From assembly GCA_053919585.1 (NCBI GenBank), contig CM132783.1: 64,000 nt of DNA. The stretch is one strand, 5' to 3'. A program made the position numbers and the translations under genes. Numbering within the stretch: the first letter of the stretch is position 1; each line of letters begins with the position of its first letter. This document shows positions 27,552 through 47,546 of this stretch, one piece after another. The stretch comes from Euprymna scolopes. Lineage: Eukaryota. Under the pieces are notes generated by a model. The model was given only the letters and a program-made list of their open reading frames with translations. It was not told the origin of the DNA and made no database searches.

Positions 27552-30500
27552 TCATAACACTTCTCGGTAAACAATATTCTTAGTATATGTTACACCACAC
27601 TTTCTGTCCTGATTATCATCTCTATGCAGTTGCATTACCTTAAATTTCACACTGTACTTAGATCGAGCTCTTGAACATGCCACATACAGTTGACCATGAG
27701 AAAATACAGGTTGTTGAAGATATATACCAACCTTATCTAAAGTTTGACCTTGTGCTTTATTGGTGGTCAGTGAATATGCTAATCGTATTGGAAACTGTAT
27801 CCGATGAAATGCAAACGGAACATTTGTATCACTTGGTTTTAACTTAATTCTTGGAATGATAACTGTGGACCCTCTATTAGATCCATTAATTAAAATAGCA
27901 ATGATGCTGTTTTGATGACATTCTTTTATTTTCATCCTAGTTCCATTACAAAGTCCTTGATTTATGGATAAATTTCGCAGTCGTATTACTATTGCCCCTA
28001 TTTTCGCATTAAGTCGGTGAGGTGACATTCCAGATAGAGTTAATGAATTTATGAACTCGATAGGATAATTTTGAAGTTCAGCATCATCATCGGAGATGTA
28101 ATCTGTACTTAAATGTGTATTTATGCCTCCGGGAAGATTATTTAGAATTTCTTCATTTACTGTAAAACAATCTGTATTGTTTGGAGTCATGATGATTCTA
28201 TTTTCCATTTTTTGAGGGCTGCAATCAAATATTTCTGAGATTAGAGAACCATTACATACCGAATCATCAGGAACATCTATGGCATCTACAGGAACGTCAT
28301 TGAGACTGCTCATTAGTGTACCATTACCAAGATGAAGTAGCCATCTACAAAACTCCTGTTCATTTATGTTAGTTCTGGCGTTTTGTGTTAGCTGTAATTG
28401 ACTGAAATGATGCCACAATGTGAATCTTTTAAGACAGGTGTCTATAATAGATGTAGGTTATCCATGTGACAGTACTGGCAAAATTTGCCTGAGGTCACCT
28501 CCAAGTATGAGAAATTTTCCACCAAATATTTTATCGTTACCCATTATATCTTGTAAACATCTATCTATAGCAAGCAGTGCATGATTAGGTATCACAGATA
28601 CCTACAAGAGAAACGTTACAGACACTGGTTTTTGTCAGAGGTGCAGGTAGTTTAATATACTGTGGAGTGTTTTCCCTGAAGTAAGTAGCATTGCAGCAAT
28701 GCCAGTCCATGCTGCAGTGGCGGTTACAGTACTGCTAGAGGTGAAGTAATCATATAACATGTTGAATAAAACGGGTTTTCCTGATCCGGCTGGGGCATCT
28801 AAATAGAAGCAATTGTTGTGTGGGGCTTCTTTTTCAGTTCCATGACAGCCTTGATTATAGTATTAAAGACCTCTAATTGTTCATTGTTTAGCAATTCAAT
28901 ATTAGGCTGGTTTGTATTTTGAGTCATATTATCTATTGGAGGATCACCTGTTGGTTCAAGTAAACTCATTGCCTGGCAAGAAGACCCATGCTCATTAAAT
29001 ATTGCTTTTATCAAATGAAGTGCAATGTTTTCACATATGCTTTCATCATAAGCAGAAATAAGTATTCAATCATGCTCTGTTTATGGTTAATGAATAGTTG
29101 AAAGGCATCCACTGGATGATGATAAAGACACAGCATTGCAAGCATGCTACGTAGTTTTTGTGGCATTCTAAATGTAGCAGCTTCAGTAAGAGCATTTTCT
29201 AATTCAGTATCATCTTGCAATAATCTAAGGCTGATGCAAGCTTCTCTAAATGTAGGGAATGTATGACCTTGGACTGTTCTCAAATCTTCAAATGACTTTC
29301 CTCCAGAGACATGAAGAAGCAAAATCCGTAAATAAAACTTTTCACCTTGGTTTGGTGAAACTGAATACATTCTTGTGATCAAATTACTTGGCCGCTCTCT
29401 TTTAGTCCATTTTGTAGTAGTTTTGTTAAATACATAATGATGTGGAATATCACAGTAAAAATATTGGTTAGCAGTAATATCATTCTGATTTAGTTCAAAC
29501 CAAGCAGTCAAATTTGTGTGGTGTTGTTGTGCTTGTTGAATTGCTTGTTCAGCTTGTTCATGTTGATAATAAATCTGTTGCTCTCCAGGCATGTGTACAG
29601 CTAAACCGTACACAACATGAGACTGTCCATGCATTTTATAGTCAGAAAGACGCCGCATTGCTTCTGGAGGTGATACATATCTGCATGATAGATATTGCTT
29701 GACTTTATCTCTTTGTTCTGATCGCATTGTTTCTTCTTGATTGATATTAATAGATGAATCATGGTTATTAACCTCCATCATAGCACTATCATGTCCTTTA
29801 TAAACATATTTAAATATGTATTTTATACTCTTGACTGAAGAGCAGATTTCTAAGTTAATATGAGCTCGATATTTTCTCAGAAGAAATTTGTTGAAAGGGA
29901 CTATGTATCTATTATCAAGAGTAAAATTACCGACTTGAACTGAGTCACCATTATTTGCACGCTTGTAAGCTGGGTATCCATCAATGTTTTCTACTGTTTC
30001 TTCTCTAAATGCCTTTGGAAAACTTTTTTTGCATAATCCTTTACTCATACAAGGAGAATTAGGATTAACTGCACCACATGGACCATGTACCATTAAAGAT
30101 TTAACTAAATCACGAAGCTCTGGATCTTCAGGTCCAGGTATTTCTGCTGACACAATTGCATCAATTTGTTGAGCTGTTCTGATCTTATCCTGATCTCGCA
30201 GCATTATGATCATGTGGCAGTGTGGTAGCCCTCTATTTTGAAATCCAATAACATAAACATATGCAACATGAGTTCCCAATACATGTCTGTCTTTAATGTC
30301 TTTCAAAAGTTCAGTTAGATGTGCATGAAACACACGTGATATTAGGTCAGGTCGATTTTGTGCAAGTTCTGATGACCCCAAGTTGTTTAATATTTCAGGA
30401 CATCTTGGATTACATGTATAGGTAAGGAATAGGTATGGCTTTCCATATTTACAGAAAACTGCCATTGCATCTTGATACAGTTGTTGAAGATTCCTAGGAC

Positions 30501-31796
30501 TTTCTGTAAATGAAGATGGTAGAATAACTGGTACACCAGGATCGCCATCTTCATTCCTTGCTAAATGATCCATTAAACCAGAATATTGAGCTGCTCTTAG
30601 TTGACTTTGATGGCTTTTAATGAAGTTCAATCTGCACCCTTCAACTTTCACATATGCATCAACTACATATTGTTGGAATAGTTTACCAGATCTATGGATA
30701 ATACTGAATGAATCTCTAATTGCAAGGCGATAACTGTAATACTCTTGCATTGTCACTTTATTGCGAACTCTTGTTTGCTGTTCTGGCCTATGTTGCATGT
30801 TTATGTGCCAGCCTTGTTCAGCATTTGGAAACAATATGGGATATATCATGGGGTCCAGGTGGCAATACATATAAGAATTTCGGTGTTTTGGTTGAGAATG
30901 TGGGTAAACAATAATATCTCTGTTAGCAGGTGGAGCACCATCCTCACCAACAAATGCTACACCTATTTCGTTGTTTATTGGATTGTTAAATATTTTGATA
31001 TCTGGACCAGCCGTAAAATGCATCGAAACTCTCCTTGGCTTTACATTTTCCCTTATAGCAAGTGCTTCCTCTTCTAATTCAATGGCCCTCATATTTTTAT
31101 AAGCTTGGGCATAAGGATTATACTCCATAACTGTAGCTATGGTTTCAATGACACTTTTGATACATTTATTATTTTCTGGTAAATTACACCGGAGTTAATT
31201 TGCTTCAGATGAGTCCAAGATGTAAATTTGACCATATTTTCTCTCCTCTTCATTATTTGGGTGCAGAGTGCTGGAATAATGATAGGTTTGACCTTGTAAT
31301 CGAAAACAATAGGGGCCTCTTCCAGAAGGGCGGACAATATTTGCTCAAAATATGCAAATGAAAATAATGAGTTGTAATTGCGTATATTAGATCTGAAATT
31401 AAATGCTTCTTGGTCATTACCTTCGAGTATACTTTGGAGTTGAGGAGGATAATCTTGTAAGGGAGGAAGAGAAACTTTTTCTTTTAGACAACAATTCAAT
31501 GCTTCTCCTCGAAATCTAAGTGCTTTACAAAATGAGCAAATTAAACTCATGTCACCTACAATATAATACGGGATATTCATATTGTTTCTTCGTTCCCGTT
31601 GCCTAGCTCTTTTATTTTGCAGATAAAGTTGTCTGTCTTCTTCAGTCATGTTATTTATTTGCTGTCTCAATATGTTTCTCCTTTGCAATCTGATATTATC
31701 CCTTTCTTCAGTTCGTAGCTGCTGACGCCTTCGTCTTTGTCGTTCTCTTGCTGCACATCTTGTATCTTCCAATGTAGTGGTAGTGATTTGGTTCAT
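27552..31796 (-). pseudogene. Helitron RepHel pseudogene (zinc finger, HUH Rep, Pif1-like helicase)
   Basis: 31137-31796 coiled coil + CSFCKA..NCC; 29011-31128 Rep with FLTYTCNP, VIGFQNRGLPHCH, KYIFKYVYKG; Walker A DAPAGSGK ~28800; 27552-28418 GLCNGTR, QFPIRLAY..TNKAQGQT, HGQLYVACSR; frameshifts at ~31350 and ~29055, Walker B deleted. Confidence 0.95.
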
Positions 31797-31797
31797 T

Positions 31798-32730
31798 CTG
31801 TGTGAAAATTTAATTAGTCTTAATAAAAAAAATATAAATAAAGATTTTGATATGAAAAATAAATGTTTCTATAATGAAATAAAATTAAATATAAATGTTT
31901 AAAATGAAAATAAATATTTCTTTATTAATGAAACCGTCTTTTATATTAAAAAATCATTAATGTGTAATTTTTCTAAGAGGGAATTTAAATCAATATTTTC
32001 ATAATTTAGCTCTGTAAATAGGATATCTAGATGATATCTAGGTGAATTATATAAATTATTTAATAATAAATTATTCCCTCTCGTAACATTTATTGGTGAT
32101 TCTACACTTTGTCGCCGAAAAAAATATCCCATGTTTTTCAGCGCACCTGCTGCCAGAATCCAAGAGAGATATCAGTATTTTAAAGTGTATGAAATATTTT
32201 ATTTATTCGATAAATATATTGAAGTAAAAGTGTAGAAGCACCTATTTTGGCTTTAATTAAAGAACTGTACACGCTTTCCAGTTATTTCATGATTCGGTCA
32301 TAGTTTAAAGTACTGATGTCTTCCTCGGATTCTGGCAGCAGATGTGCTAAAAAAACATAGCGTTTTTTTTCGGTTACAAAGTGTAGAAGCATACATTTAT
32401 TTGTGAACATGTTATTTCCTTTTGATGAATAACTTAATAATTTCATTTCAATAAATTATATCTTGAATTTTGTAAAATATACGAAAAATGAAAAAATTGA
32501 GAATAAATATTTGTTTAAATCCTAAGTAATGAAACAAAGTGTTTATTTGATATTAAAAATGTTAAGTTGCGTAATTTTTCAAAGGGTATTTAATAGTCAA
32601 TATTTTTTCTAATTTATCTCTATAAAGATTAAAATTTAAGTATTTTAATGGCCGTTTCTAAAATTGCCGAAAGTAATTTAATTATTTTTAATATTTACAG
32701 TAAGAAGGATCAAAAATGTTAAAAACTTAC
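31798..32730 (-). other. Putative 5'-UTR intron of the RepHel transcript
   Basis: Donor GTAAGT at 32730; branch CTAAT and ttttcacacAG acceptor ending at 31798, one base before the ATG at 31796. Confidence 0.55.
32100..32388. repeat. ~65-bp inverted repeat (MITE-like) inside the Helitron intron
   Basis: ttctacactttgt..ctgctgccagaatcc (32100-32161) vs ggattctggcagcag..acaaagtgtagaa (32327-32388). Confidence 0.7.
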
Positions 32731-32903
32731 GCCGGATTAAATATTTAGTTTCTGATCATCAAAATAAGCTGCTTATAATCATTTAATGCTGGATGACTTA
32801 TCCACAAGTCAGTAAACTTTGTTGAAGCAAAGCTCTGTTTTTGTTGTTGACGATGGTGTTGGTTGTTTACGGTTAAATGAATAACGAAATTTCACCAAGT
32901 TGC

Positions 32904-32936
32904 ACTGGTTTATTAGATAATTTTGTGACTTATATA
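32904..32936 (-). promoter_or_regulatory. Putative Helitron core promoter (TATA + Inr)
   Basis: Minus strand TATATAAG at 32936-32929 and CCAGT initiator-like A at 32906, 30 nt downstream. Confidence 0.5.
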
Positions 32937-33229
32937 GAAGCTTTACCGTAAAATTCGGCTAAAACAATTGTTGACGAATTACCTCCTTTGAATCAATATC
33001 GTCTGCTTGTGGCCATTGGAGATCGTCTGCTTGTGGTAATTGAAGCGAAAACCTTATTAGGTATTAAATGCTAAAACATTTTAATACGGCTGGCTAATTG
33101 GCTATAAAGTAAAAGTTATTCCGAACTTTGATCTAACATTTCCATAAAAAAAAAGAAAAAAAAGCTTAACATTTTCTTGTATCTATTTTTTATATTAAGA
33201 AAAATGTAAGCATCATGGTGAAATAATAG

Positions 33230-34090
33230 AAATACCATTCTTAATAAGGGAGAGGGTTTGACTATTCTAAACCTTCACCTAAATAACGATTTAACGAAAA
33301 AAAAATGTTCTTGTATCTTTTTTTATAATTTTTGATAAATAAGAAAAAGCAATAAACTTTGATAGCACTATTGTAAGAATCATGATGAAAACCATTCTTA
33401 ATATGGGGGTAACTATTCTGAAACTTCACCTAACAATGTAAAAAAAATAAGGGAAAAATATATGCATGAAAAATAAATATGTTTACAGTTAAATAAAATA
33501 TACTGTCAATCTTTAAATAAGGAATAAATATTTATTTAAACCATAATTATTGAGAGAAAGTATTTTACTGCAAAAAAACGGTTATGGGGGAAGGGTTAAC
33601 TATTTTGAACCTATTTTGATACAAGAGAATAAATATTTCTTAATTAATGAAACCGTTTTTTATATTAAAAATCATTTAATGGTCTTGTATCTTTTTTTAT
33701 AATTTGTTTTAAAATAAGAAAAAAAAACTTTGATACCGCTATTGTAAGAATCATGCTGATATGGGAAAGCGGGTTAAATATTCTGAAACTTCACCTAACA
33801 ATGTAATAAAACCTTCGAGACAAGATCAAAGTGGAGTATCTGTTCTTCAGATGCTGCACTTCAATTTCTTGTTCTCTGTCAGTGGAGGAGAAATCCTTCA
33901 CGACTGAGACATTTTTTTCCTTTTCTCCACGTTAAAAAAACACCCTGGTGTCTATATCTGTCCCGTGGGGAGGCATTGTTAATAGGAACAATGAAATAAA
34001 AATAATGGAAAAAATATATGTATGAACAATAAGTATTTCTTCAATTAAATAAAATATACTGAAAATCTTGAAATAGGAAATAAATATTTC
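33230..34090. repeat. Helitron subterminal repeats
   Basis: Recurring ccattcttaata.gggg..ggttaactattctgaaacttcacctaa blocks at ~33235, 33392, 33585, 33760; mirrored at 44570-45235 in copy B. Confidence 0.7.
33812..33986 (+). mobile_element. 175-bp retroposed insertion in Helitron A
   Basis: Absent from copy B; flanked by 15-bp TSD aacaatg(t/a)aataaaa (33797-33811 / 33987-34001); homologous to the 45522-46019 element. Confidence 0.85.
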
Positions 34091-43888: not shown

Positions 43889-45521
43889 CTGTCTATATAT
43901 GGTTCTGGATTATTTTAAAGACAATTATGCATAGAAGGTATCGTTCCACAGTTTAAATAGTATAGTATTTTACTTACATTTTTAACGATGTCTTCTGTTT
44001 ATTATTGTAGTGAATACGGAACGCTTATTCTATTTTATTCAGTAATAAATATATATTTTTACATTTAACGTTAGGAGTTCGTTTTTTTTTTTTTACTGCG
44101 CTACTTTATCTTTTTTTTTATTGTGCCACTTTATCTTTTTTTTATTTACTTTTGAGTGAGCCTTACATAACAAAAAATATGTTTAGAAATACATGTTACA
44201 AAAGTCAAGAATTACTTTATTAAATAAATCACCAAAGTGACCATTCGCAAATACACTGAGTAACACAGAGTCAAAACATATTTTACGTCTTGTTCTGTTT
44301 TGTTTTGCTTTTGTTTTACGGCATATCACTCCTTTTTCATGTTATTTAATGCCGAATCGAGTAATTTTGTAAAATTTATACATCGTCACGTTGTTTACAT
44401 AGTTATTATTTATGGTTTGTCTGTTTTATTTTGCTTCTTTTACAGGCATTCATCATCTTCTGTCAACCGACAGGGCATACATATTTAAATACTATAAAAA
44501 ATGGACACAACATTGTTTTGAATATGAAATAAAACACTTTGTTTCATTACTTACGATTTAATTTATTTAAAGAAATATTTATTTCCTATTTAAAGATTTT
44601 CAGTATATTTTATTTAACTGAGGAAATATTTATTGTTCATAAATATATTTTTTCCATTATTTTTATTACATTGTTAGGTGAAGTTTCAGAATAGTTAACC
44701 CCCTCCCCATATTGAGAATGGCTTTCGGCATAATTCTTACAATAGCGGTATCAAAGTTTTTTTATTTTTTTATTTTAAAACAAATTATAAAAAAAATACA
44801 CGACCATTAATTTTTTTTCATTAAATCGCTACTTAGGTGAAGGTGCAAAATAGTTAACCCTTCTCCCCCATACCCGTTTTTTTATGCAGTAAAATACTGT
44901 TTCAATAATTATGGTTTAAATAAATATGTATTCTTTATTTAAAGATTTACAGTATAATTTATTTAACTGAAGAAATATTTATTGTTCATACATATATTTT
45001 TCCCTTATTTTTTTACAGTGTTTCGTAAAGTTTCAGAATAGTTAACCCCCTTCCCTTATTAAGAATGGCTTTCAGCATGATTCTTACAATAGTGCTATCA
45101 AAGTTTATTGATTTTTCTTATTTAACAAAAATTATAAAAAAGATACAAGAACATTTTAAACATTTTTTTTCATTAAATGGTTATCTAGGTTAAGCTTAAG
45201 AATAGTCAAACCCTCTACCCTTATTAAGAATGGCGTTTTTATTATTGCAGCATGATGCTTACATTTTTCTTAATATAATAAAAGATAAAAAAAAATGTTA
45301 AGCTTTTTTTTTAAATTAAAATGTTAGATCAAAGTTCGGAATAACTTACTTTATAGCCAATTAGCCAGCTGTATTAAAATGCATTTAATATCTAATAAGG
45401 TTTTCGCTCCAATTGTCACAGCAGACGATATCGATTCAAAGGAGGTAATTCGTCAACAATTGTTTTAGCCGAATTTTACGGTAAAGTGTAGTGGTGAATA
45501 TATTATACATATCCCCCAGTT

Positions 45522-46019
45522 TGTATTTATTTGCTTCTCACTGAGCAAATTAGGCACAAGGCCGTTTTTTTAATGTGGAGAGAGAGGGAGAGGGGAGGGA
45601 AATGGGGACCAGCTCCCGATGGGTGGGAAATGGGAGTTTGATAGGAACTGTGTGTATGAAGGGTTGCCCCTACACTGACCAAGATAGATATGTGGGGTTA
45701 CCCCCACATATGGGCTTTGCTAGCAGTATCTGTCGGAACAGTTGGTTTATTTGCTTCCCCACTGAGCAAATTAGGCACAAGGCCGTTTTTTAATGTGGAG
45801 AGAGAGGGAGGGGGAGGGAAAGGGGGATCCAGCTCCCGAGAGGCTGGATAGTAACTGTGGTTTCTAGGGTGATCCCTACATTGACCAAGTTCAGATATGT
45901 GGGGTTACCCCCACATATGGTCATTGCTAGTCATAGCTAGTCTTTGCTTCAGCATCTGTCGGAACAGATACTGCACTTTGATCTTGTCGCCCGGGCCGCA
46001 AAGGGCGGGGGTCAGTGTA
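45522..46019 (-). mobile_element. Dimeric structured SINE-like retroposon
   Basis: Perfect 18-bp TSD tatacatatcccccagtt (45504-45521 / 46020-46037); two ~220-270-bp related units, each ending agcaaataaa on the minus strand. Confidence 0.8.
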
Positions 46020-46038
46020 TATACATATCCCCCAGTTA

Positions 46039-47546
46039 TTCATTTGATAAAAGCAATATTTAATGAGCATGGTTCTTCTTGCCAGGCAATGGGTTTACTT
46101 GAACCAACAGGTGATCCTCCAATAGATAATATGACTCGAAATACAAACCGGCATAATGTTGAATTCCTAAACAATGAACAATTAGAGGTATTTAATACTA
46201 TAATCAAGGCTGTCATGGCAACTGAAAAAGAAGCCCCACACAACAATTGCTTCTATTTAGATGCCCCAGCAGGATCAGGAAAAAAAAATTTATTCAACAT
46301 GTTATATGATTACTTCACCTCCAGCAGTACTGTAACCGCCACTGCGACATTGCTGCAATGCTACTAACTTCAGGAAAAACACTCCACATTATATTCAAAC
46401 TACGTGTACCTCTGACAGAAACCAGTGTCTGTAACGTTTCTCCTCTATCAGAGCATGCTTTTTTTGAGAAAGGTAAAGGTATTCATCATAGACGAAGCCT
46501 CTATGATACCTAATCATGCACTGCTTGCTATAGATAGATATTTACAAGATATAATGGGTACCGATAAAATATTTGGTGGAAAATTTCTCATACTTGGAGG
46601 TGATCTCAGACAAATTTTGCCAGTAGTGCCACATGGATCACCTACATCTATTATAGACACCTGTCTTAAAAGATGCCCATTGTGGCATCATTTCAGTCAA
46701 TTACAACTAACACAAAACGCCAGAAGTAACATAAATGAACAGGAGTTTTGTAGATGGCTCCTTCATCTTGGTAACGGTACACTAATGAGCAGTCTTAATG
46801 ACGTTCCTGTAGATGCCATAGATGTTCCTGGTGATTCGGTATGTAATGGTTCTCTAATCTCAGAAATATTTGATTGCAGCCCTCAAGAAATGGAAAATAG
46901 AATCATCATGACTCCAAAAAATACAGAATGTTTAACAGTAAATGTAGAAATTCTAAATAATCTTTCCGGAGGCATAAATACATATTTAAGTACAGATTAC
47001 ATCTCCGATGATGATGCTGAACATCAAAAGTATCCTATCGAGTTCATAAATTCATTAACTCCATCTGGAATGTCACCTCACCGACTTAATGTGAAAATAG
47101 GGGCAATAGTAATACGACTGCGAAATTTATCCATAAATCAAGGACTTTGTAATGGAACTAGGATGAAAATAAAAGAATGTCATCAAAACAGCATCATTGC
47201 TATTTTAATTAATGGATCTAATAGAGGTTCAACAGTTATCATTCCAAGAATTAAGTTAAAGCCAAGTGATACAAATATTCCGTTTGCATTTCATCGGATA
47301 CAGTTTCCAATACGATTAGCATATTCACTGACCACCAATAAAGCACAAGGCCAAACTTTAGATAAGGCTGGTATATATCTTCAACAACCTGTATTTTCTC
47401 ATGGTCAACTCTATGTGGCATGTTCAAGAGCTCGATCTAAGTACAGTGTGAAATTTAAGGTAATGCAACTGCATAGAAATGATAATCAGGACAGAAAGTG
47501 TGGTGTAACATATACTAAGAATATTGTTTACCGTGAAGTGTTATGA
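46039..47546 (+). pseudogene. Helitron Pif1-like helicase fragment
   Basis: LDAPAGSGK (Walker A), frameshift, then 373-aa ORF with IIDEASM, GGDLRQILPV, GLCNGTR, KAQGQT, HGQLYVACSR. Confidence 0.95.

Follow-up and report, generated by a model that had tools for sequence, protein, structure and literature searches.

What kind of element occupies positions 45522-46019 of the 64,000-nucleotide stretch of DNA analysed here (the window), and how did it come to carry two similar units behind one head? The 498-nt insert has its RNA sense on the minus strand and, as read within 45300-46250, lies between perfect 18-bp target site duplications (TSDs; tatacatatcccccagtt, no strand assigned) at 45504-45521, in a host Helitron, and at 46020-46037. 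A sequence-only reading had noticed this duplication and had described the insert as a structured retroposon mediated by a long interspersed element (LINE), similar to a short interspersed element (SINE) and not assignable to a known class. We consider it probable that the insert is a stack of two SINEU-like units with heads derived from the U2 small nuclear RNA (snRNA), which would have been moved by a relative of a Tx1/Keno-type LINE, with later copies landing in the hairpins of earlier ones. The LINE dependence and the SINE-like character proposed in the sequence-only reading are upheld, and the U2-derived head now puts the element among the SINEU-like, snRNA-headed retroposons.

Results

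Two stacked units with one U2-like head

The insert as a whole (45522..46019, minus strand) is composed of two U2-headed, SINE-like units stacked on each other, with one head for both, and contains no open reading frame (ORF) of at least 200 aa. Read on the minus strand, the units stand head to tail and measure 270 nt (46019 to 45750) and 228 nt (45749 to 45522), the latter being without its first ~50 nt and 82% alike to the former. A full unit of ~270 nt was shown to begin with a leader of 11 nt, which is followed by a remodelled copy of U2 nt ~5-64, then by a body rich in hairpins and finally by a tail of ~60 nt with the end GCAAATAAATAC; in the 98 units that were aligned, the tails end GCAAATAAATAC(A/C). 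The 3' end of the insert itself reads GCAAATAAATACA, which is (AAAT)-like and not the A-rich tail that had been described before.

A pattern search located the genuine U2 of this genome in a 764-bp tandem array, which Rfam confirmed as U2 at 161-179 bits, and the copy at L031:1472-1667 (179 bits) was taken as the reference. Sense positions 35-64 of the head in the window match U2 nt 24-53 of this reference at 26 of 30 positions, and the match includes an extra A that is peculiar to the U2 of this genome. The matching block (45956..45985, minus strand) contains the branch-point-recognition sequence. The single-unit copies of the element at paralogous sites, which are less decayed, match U2 nt 24-47 completely (24/24), and a gapped alignment spans U2 nt 5-64. 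These comparisons of nucleotide sequence show that the head of the element is derived from U2 snRNA. The 11-nt leader had no match in the 5' flanks of two U2 genes.

Other small RNAs were also considered as the source of the head. ARAGORN detected no tRNA in 45000-46600, and an Rfam cmscan of the same interval on both strands (E <= 10) returned no tRNA, 5S, 7SL, ribozyme or other relevant family. A tRNA-derived SINE was therefore rejected, and the tRNA, 5S or 7SL head with an internal promoter of a classical RNA polymerase III SINE is likewise missing. The Rfam comparison that the sequence-only reading had recommended thus leaves the insert region without a match, and its statement that no tRNA or 5S head is present stands, except that the element does have a small-RNA head, which comes from U2.

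The unit next to the left flank (45522..45741, minus strand) is of B type, matches subfamily cluster 8 and runs from its position 53 to the tail GCAAATAAATACA; it is the original insertion in the Helitron and is called the resident unit below. The body and tail of a later arrival occupy 45746..45954 (minus strand) and belong to an A-type unit of subfamily cluster 5, whose 23 members include many at unrelated loci. The A-type diagnostics are GATGCTG, a 20-nt AGACTAGCTATGACTAGCA insert and a hairpin with an AUCA loop. The tail of the added unit is separated from the resident unit by a filler, CCAA in the sense direction (45742..45745, minus strand), which equals the stereotyped junction of ...AAATAAATACC with ATCTGTTCC after a 2-nt deletion and one substitution.

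Sense positions 1-50, which comprise the leader and the 5' portion of the head derived from U2, are found at 45970..46019 (minus strand). This leader differs from that of the single-unit paralogues at 2 positions, and A-type units elsewhere have other leaders; most likely, the leader and 5' head belong to the resident unit and not to the added one. Since the 5' unit of the window has the resident-type leader and shows the A-type diagnostics from position 66 onward, what appears to be a full-length unit is a chimera, in which the resident head is followed by a body and a tail of A type. Its 5' join falls at some point within the U2 block that both units have in common. The U2 block and its complement form a hairpin (H1; 45950..45973, minus strand) of 10 bp with one G.U pair and a UCCG loop, in agreement with the sequence-only reading. 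H1 is the landing zone of later units, and the hot spot lies between 45969 and 45970.

The same insertion in 28 Helitron copies

The history of the insert can be followed in the paralogous copies of its host. We fetched 29 paralogues, of which 27 retained both flanks, and together with the window these make a series of 28 copies. The left flank and the TSD are common to all of them, and the element is present at this same site in 28/28. As every flank-retaining copy is filled, the insertion is older than the spread of the host repeat. The number of units, by comparison, varies from one copy to another: 12 copies contain a single unit of ~272 nt with a full head (insert of 240-276 nt), 7, including the window, contain two units (459-498 nt), 5 contain three (666-692 nt) and 4 contain four to six (921-1313 nt).

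The unit adjoining the left flank is of B type in each of the 28 copies and 91-95% identical to the 3' unit of the window, and the head adjoining the right flank always has the same leader. The inner units of the stacks belong to other subfamilies and are found between the head and the body of the resident unit. Pairwise divergence amounts to 4.8% among the resident B-type units and to 3.4-3.6% in the two subfamilies that were added most often, and the youngest subfamily (3.6%) adjoins the head in 8 paralogues. Gains of an A-type unit are seen in three paralogues, each with a different junction; at the common Helitron site, the junctions of A- with B-type units lie at resident position 53 in the window, 73 in L002 and 67 in L003. 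The series shows that the element has been a passenger of the Helitron and that units were gained after the Helitron had been amplified.

The next ORF downstream of the insert (46425-47546, plus strand) encodes 373 aa with PIF1-like helicase and Pif1 2B domains, so that the SINE stands antisense just upstream of the helicase-coding stretch of the Helitron. This ORF fits the Helitron call made in the sequence-only reading. As a separate observation, Helitron copies carrying the SINE still number in the hundreds: a search with the left flank alone gave 827 candidates genome-wide.

A stereotyped junction in arrays of the element

A search of the element's own genome (5.9-Gb assembly) gave more than 5,594 candidates. 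When one unit was mapped onto 30 fetched loci, long head-to-tail arrays of unlike units were found, in which the 3' end of each unit is complete and the 5' ends begin at a small set of recurring positions. The commonest 3' junction, ...GCAAATAAATACC joined to ATCTGTTCCG, corresponds to U2-like nt 38/39 and to unit position 50/51; 63 of 183 sampled units start exactly at position 51. The junction of the tail with ATCTGTTCCG occurs 46,800 times at <=1 mismatch, compared with 0 occurrences of the reversed control, and the uninterrupted sequence from head to hairpin occurs 39,095 times genome-wide. These counts show both the stereotyped nature of the junction and its abundance. In a spot comparison of the places listed for these two sequences in arrays on contig C1, which was made by eye and is not a count, one head was followed by several junctions 183-218 bp apart.

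A LINE in the genuine U2 array shares part of the tail

The 764-bp tandem U2 array on contig C9 is interrupted at several points by copies of one LINE (L037, G000:C9:168876200-168885100; also L038 and L039). The gaps of ~8 kb in the array hold a 7.6-kb element with two ORFs. ORF2 contains endonuclease/exonuclease/phosphatase (APE), reverse transcriptase (RT) and zf-RVT domains, and ORF1 contains a zinc knuckle. Judged by these predicted domains, the U2-resident LINE is of the APE type and Tx1/Keno-like, and is not a restriction-like Utopia (compare PMC4640811). It begins after U2 nt 47, and U2 resumes at nt 24, which gives a 24-bp duplication (U2 nt 24-47). The LINE is also dispersed over many chromosomes, at more than 100 places with 97-100% protein identity and in many cases with the full 1145-aa frame; from these identities it looks currently or very recently active.

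The 3' untranslated region (UTR) of the LINE and the tail of the SINE have in common a CT-rich block and an exact 17-mer, GGCCTTGTGCCTAATTT, after which they diverge, the LINE ending in (AAAT)n. The shared segment of ~45 nt is found in the SINE and in three variants of the LINE 3' UTR, and the last ~25 nt differ. In the insert, the 17-mer is located at 45547..45563 in the tail of the resident unit, where it is common to LINE 3' UTRs, and at 45768..45784 in that of the added unit (both on the minus strand). Among its 199 occurrences in the fetched loci, 194 are SINE tails and three are the variants of the LINE 3' UTR. By alignment, a partial tail homology to the U2-resident LINE is thus shown, and the LINE with the same 3' tail that the sequence-only reading had proposed to look for was found as far as these ~45 nt and the exact 17-mer, but not for the whole tail. 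In L019 and L029, the heads of SINEs are immediately preceded, at U2-like nt ~23-28, by LINE-type 3' ends, which were identified by the 17-mer; a similar AT-rich end, judged by eye, stands upstream of U2-like nt ~23-28 in L017.

Folding of the RNA and conservation of its helices

The sense strand of the element folds better than shuffled sequence (200 dinucleotide shuffles). The z-score is -3.35 for the 5' unit and -3.85 for an intact single unit taken from a paralogue, and in neither case did any shuffle fold as well (0/200). The antisense strand gave z = -1.48, and the truncated 3' unit alone gave z = -1.83, with 8/200 shuffles at least as good. The tetraloop hairpins that had been reported for the minus strand are confirmed and lie on the sense strand. 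The hairpins with a GUAA loop and 10 perfect base pairs (H2) are present in both units as described, at 45895..45918 in the added and at 45688..45711 in the resident unit. A further hairpin (H3) has a GCAA loop in the resident unit alone (45657..45673, with one U.U mismatch), which is the one unit for which it had been claimed; in the added unit, it has a 6-bp stem and an AUCA loop (45864..45879). All of these are on the minus strand.

We counted the pairing of six named helices in the 98 aligned units and found that 94.5% of the cells are paired, compared with 34-48% when the partners are slid. The U2-derived hairpin shows two changes from U-A to U.G, with pairing retained on the sense strand only. 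Pair 162/175 of H3 is UA in 27 units, AU in 15 and UU in 42, and is a true U-A/A-U alternative. The loop of H2 varies between subfamilies and is always GNRA (GUAA, GCAA, GCGA or GAAA). The hairpin of the leader, which corresponds to stem-loop I of U2, was compared by eye and has CCGC/GCGG or CCAG/CTGG, with UUCG loops in some subfamilies. RNAalifold recovered only fragments of the helices from the 98 units, because subfamily indels introduce gaps into the alignment.

The sequence-only reading had also proposed an H-type pseudoknot at the 3' end. Both of its stems are indeed conserved: stem S1 is 98.5% paired (47-70% when slid), and the terminal tail hairpin AUUUGCU...AGCAAAU, located in the resident unit at 45529..45550 (minus strand), is paired in 99.6% of the cells and almost invariant. 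The loop from S1-3' to S2-3' is only 0-1 nt long, and neither stem shows two-sided changes. By the general geometry of pseudoknots, a loop of 0-1 nt is too short to cross a stem of 6-7 bp, which makes a classical H-type pseudoknot with both full stems sterically unlikely, and this reading was set aside. Nested folding of the units chooses one stem or the other, and the two stems may be alternative folds.

Related sequences in the window and elsewhere

The window contains a second, inverted copy of the host repeat at 28559-33455 (minus strand), as compared with 45000-46540 (plus strand). Its left-flank homology breaks off ~35 nt short of the SINE site and is taken up again immediately behind the right TSD, with ~3.9 kb of unrelated sequence in the insertion region. 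Because of this replacement, the inverted copy represents neither an empty nor a filled site. Adjoining it, away from the site homologous to 45521/45522, is a 5'-truncated copy of a different U2-headed family (33819-33880, plus strand), which starts at U2-like nt ~22 and has a variant hairpin, TTCTTCAGATGCTGC, and a different body (CACTTCAATTT...). As its hairpin, body and site are all different, this copy is not the same retroposon as that at 45522-46019.

A related family of ~194-236 nt was found at L012:1967-2595, L010:782-1017, L014:1050-1285 and L027. It has only the first ~70 nt (head) and the last ~48 nt (tail) in common with the studied unit, the body being different, and it also occurs in tandem runs, with a period of 194 bp. 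Such a modular exchange of head, body and tail between two families is typical of SINE evolution.

Discussion

Proposed origin of the stack

In the course of events that we propose, the first two steps are documented by the paralogue series: one B-type unit inserted antisense into a Helitron, just upstream of the PIF1-like helicase stretch, with an 18-bp TSD, and the Helitron subfamily was then amplified with this unit as a passenger. An A-type unit would later have inserted at position 53 of the resident unit, inside the UCCG hairpin that arose from the branch-point-recognition sequence of U2. Somewhere within the U2 block, which is identical in both, the 5' end of the new copy would then have fused with the head already present, and such a merger results in a stack with one head and two bodies. 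We suggest that a site-specific LINE nuclease may nick the U2-like sequence, that target-primed reverse transcription may start there on the tail of the retroposon, and that the head of the new complementary DNA may anneal to the resident head to give the seamless 5' join. The machinery is likely to be a relative of the young APE- and RT-encoding (Tx1/Keno-type) LINE of the genuine U2 array; this LINE and the element have a segment of the tail in common. It is probable that the conserved hairpins are RNA features required by this machinery or for the stability of the RNA.

A further suggestion is more tentative. A lineage of LINE nucleases which formerly homed to U2 genes may now cut a SINE-specific hairpin that real U2 genes lack (U2-like nt 38/39), so that the captured U2 sequence would be a portable landing pad and each of its copies would seed stacks of one head and many bodies, which grow into satellite-like arrays. 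We regard this as possible rather than probable.

Several observations weigh against the stack of U2-headed units that we propose, or against parts of it. A LINE with the full SINE tail (ending ...GGCCTTGTGCCTAATTTGCTCAGTGGGGAAGCAAATAAATAC) was not found among the three LINE 3' UTR variants compared, and the LINE of the U2 genes joins at U2 nt 23/24 and not at 38/39. A search for the SINE tail in front of genuine downstream U2 sequence gave 0 matches at <=3 mismatches; the landing site is accordingly the remodelled hairpin of the SINE and not the U2 gene. U2 genes use an external promoter, a difficulty for the transcription of the element. The 5' join by head homology is deduced from the absence of doubled heads. 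The number of units could also be altered by exchange with other arrays, through ectopic recombination or gene conversion, and L004 shows that a single RNA can bring in a whole A+B dimer, which there has a 15-bp TSD of its own (TACATTATCTTAGAT). Finally, the overall covariation of the helices was 0.044, compared with 0.045 for shuffles, and 353 of 500 shuffles reached it. The helices are conserved, without statistical support from covariation, and the covariation test suggested by the sequence-only reading was thus not significant over the 98 units. Of the two results that this reading had set against itself, a match to a LINE 3' UTR was obtained in part, over ~45 nt of the tail, and the covariation is not significant overall.

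As to L004 itself, the dimer (region L004:1710-2210) stands immediately upstream of another U2-like head (..CTTTTGGCAAAGATCAAAGTATAGTATCTG), and the insertion is next to the U2-like block and not inside it.

Other explanations of the two units

Of the other processes that could have produced two units, exchange with other arrays of the family, by which unequal crossing-over or gene conversion would change the unit number without any new insertion, is unlikely, though less so than the rest. Tandem units that are 75-95% alike are good substrates for recombination, thousands of arrays of the family are present elsewhere in the genome, and L016 has a pair of near-identical neighbouring units. The inner units of the stacks, however, belong to distinct subfamilies that are absent from the single-unit state, and slippage within an array cannot create them. 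The youngest subfamily adjoins the head, as is expected from serial insertion at one spot, and the resident 3' unit and head are always retained. Conversion would, moreover, still require an insertion process for the 46,800 junctions. A dimer formed in one event is more improbable still. In such an event the RT, having reached the stable UCCG hairpin of a B-type RNA, would have switched to the 3' end of an A-type RNA and read on as far as the head of the latter. End-to-end jumping is a known property of the reverse transcriptases of non-LTR retrotransposons, the junctions have a few extra bases (CCAA, TCCA), such as are added when templates are switched, and lie inside a strong hairpin, and the dimer of L004 shows that two units can share a TSD of their own at an unrelated site. 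The window, on the other hand, shares its site and TSD with 12 single-unit paralogues, by which a single dimeric insertion is rejected, and also with paralogues that have other inner units and junctions. A single event cannot explain copies at one site that differ in unit number, inner units and junctions, and the head in the window is of the resident type and has no A-type leader.

The sequence-only reading had offered multimeric or circular RNA templates or template jumping as possible causes of the dimer, an account that does not agree with Helitron paralogues holding one to six units of different subfamilies within the same TSD. It had also mentioned a retrozyme-like RNA, whose multimeric transcripts would be self-cleaved at position 50/51, circularised and reverse-transcribed. 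The head-to-tail units, the exact repeating boundary at position 51 and the highly structured RNA with GNRA and UNCG loops would be in agreement with such a cycle, which we nevertheless rejected and consider scarcely credible. No hammerhead, HDV-like, twister or other ribozyme family was matched in 45000-46600 at E <= 10, and nothing suggests a ribozyme. Dispersed copies of full length begin at position 1 and are flanked by TSDs, A-type junctions range over positions 53-73, and each array examined has one complete head.

Significance

In the literature searched, snRNA-headed retroposons have been published only from crocodilians, and we found no description there of U2-headed SINEs or of self-homing SINE stacks in invertebrates. 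The element extends this kind of retroposon to an invertebrate genome, in which it is present in tens of thousands. The 28 paralogous Helitron copies are a natural experiment: all had the same single unit at the start and now have one to six. They show that arrays grow as units land again and again in the U2-derived hairpin of the element itself, which provides a concrete mechanism for the conversion of a dispersed retroposon into tandem, satellite-like DNA and a case in which the target-site specificity of a parasite drifted away from a host gene and towards its own sequence. If the captured U2 sequence does act as a portable landing pad, it would amount to a self-propagating safe-harbour strategy and to a defined route from SINE to tandem repeat, with ~47,000 junctions. 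If the genome is that of a decapodiform cephalopod, the published relatives of this lineage may be annotated as almost free of SINEs. Elements of this kind, which have no tRNA, 5S or 7SL head, would probably end up among the unclassified repeats in standard annotation.

Comparison with known systems

SINEU are SINEs of crocodilians with heads derived from U1 and U2 snRNA and have been reported only from these animals (Kojima 2015, PMC4494074). The element studied here is likewise a short, non-coding retroposon (<500 bp; unit of ~270 nt) with a U2-derived 5' region and TSDs (18 bp; 15 bp in L004), has no recognisable internal RNA polymerase III promoter, shows a marked target preference and is suspected to be driven by a Tx1-type LINE. 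Dimeric forms and the recurrence of snRNA sequence at the 5' ends are further common features. SINEU have poly(A) tails in all crocodilian groups and a Mariner element as the preferred target (PMC4494074), whereas the present element has an (AAAT)-like tail without poly(A), and its preferred target is its own head, by which arrays are built. Its host is an invertebrate, and its U2 part has been remodelled into a new UCCG hairpin. The element resembles SINEU in kind, and we do not claim that it is a member of the crocodilian SINEU-1, -2 or -3; its origin is probably independent of theirs.

LINEs that target U2 genes are known as Keno, which is of the APE type and belongs to the Tx1 group, and Utopia, which has a restriction-like endonuclease (Kojima and Jurka 2015, PMC4640811); insertions of Utopia-1_NVit into U2 genes are reported to occur in tandem (PMC4640811). 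Site-specific insertion in the 5' part of U2 is a feature that the element has in common with them, and a LINE of the Keno kind is present in the U2 array of this genome. Unlike Keno and Utopia, the element is non-autonomous, and the junction in its stacks is displaced by 15 nt towards the 3' end (U2-like nt 38/39) and was not found in genuine U2 genes.

Animal retrozymes and hammerhead-bearing tandem retroposons also consist of tandem short non-coding units, with structured RNA and a dependence on LINEs. The present element differs from them in that it has no ribozyme motif, TSD-flanked full-length copies and one head per array.

The R2 SIDEs in 28S rDNA are non-autonomous derivatives of a site-specific LINE that are co-transcribed with their target. 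The principle of such target-co-transcribed, non-autonomous derivatives has been discussed (PMC4494074). Similarly to the R2 SIDEs, the element has upstream target sequence at its 5' end, would rely on its target both to be transcribed and to be joined precisely at the 5' end, and returns to the same site. Its body is not an obvious internal deletion of a LINE, only ~45 nt of the tail being in common. Unlike the R2 SIDEs, the element carries its target with it, so that its copies spread through the genome as new landing pads.
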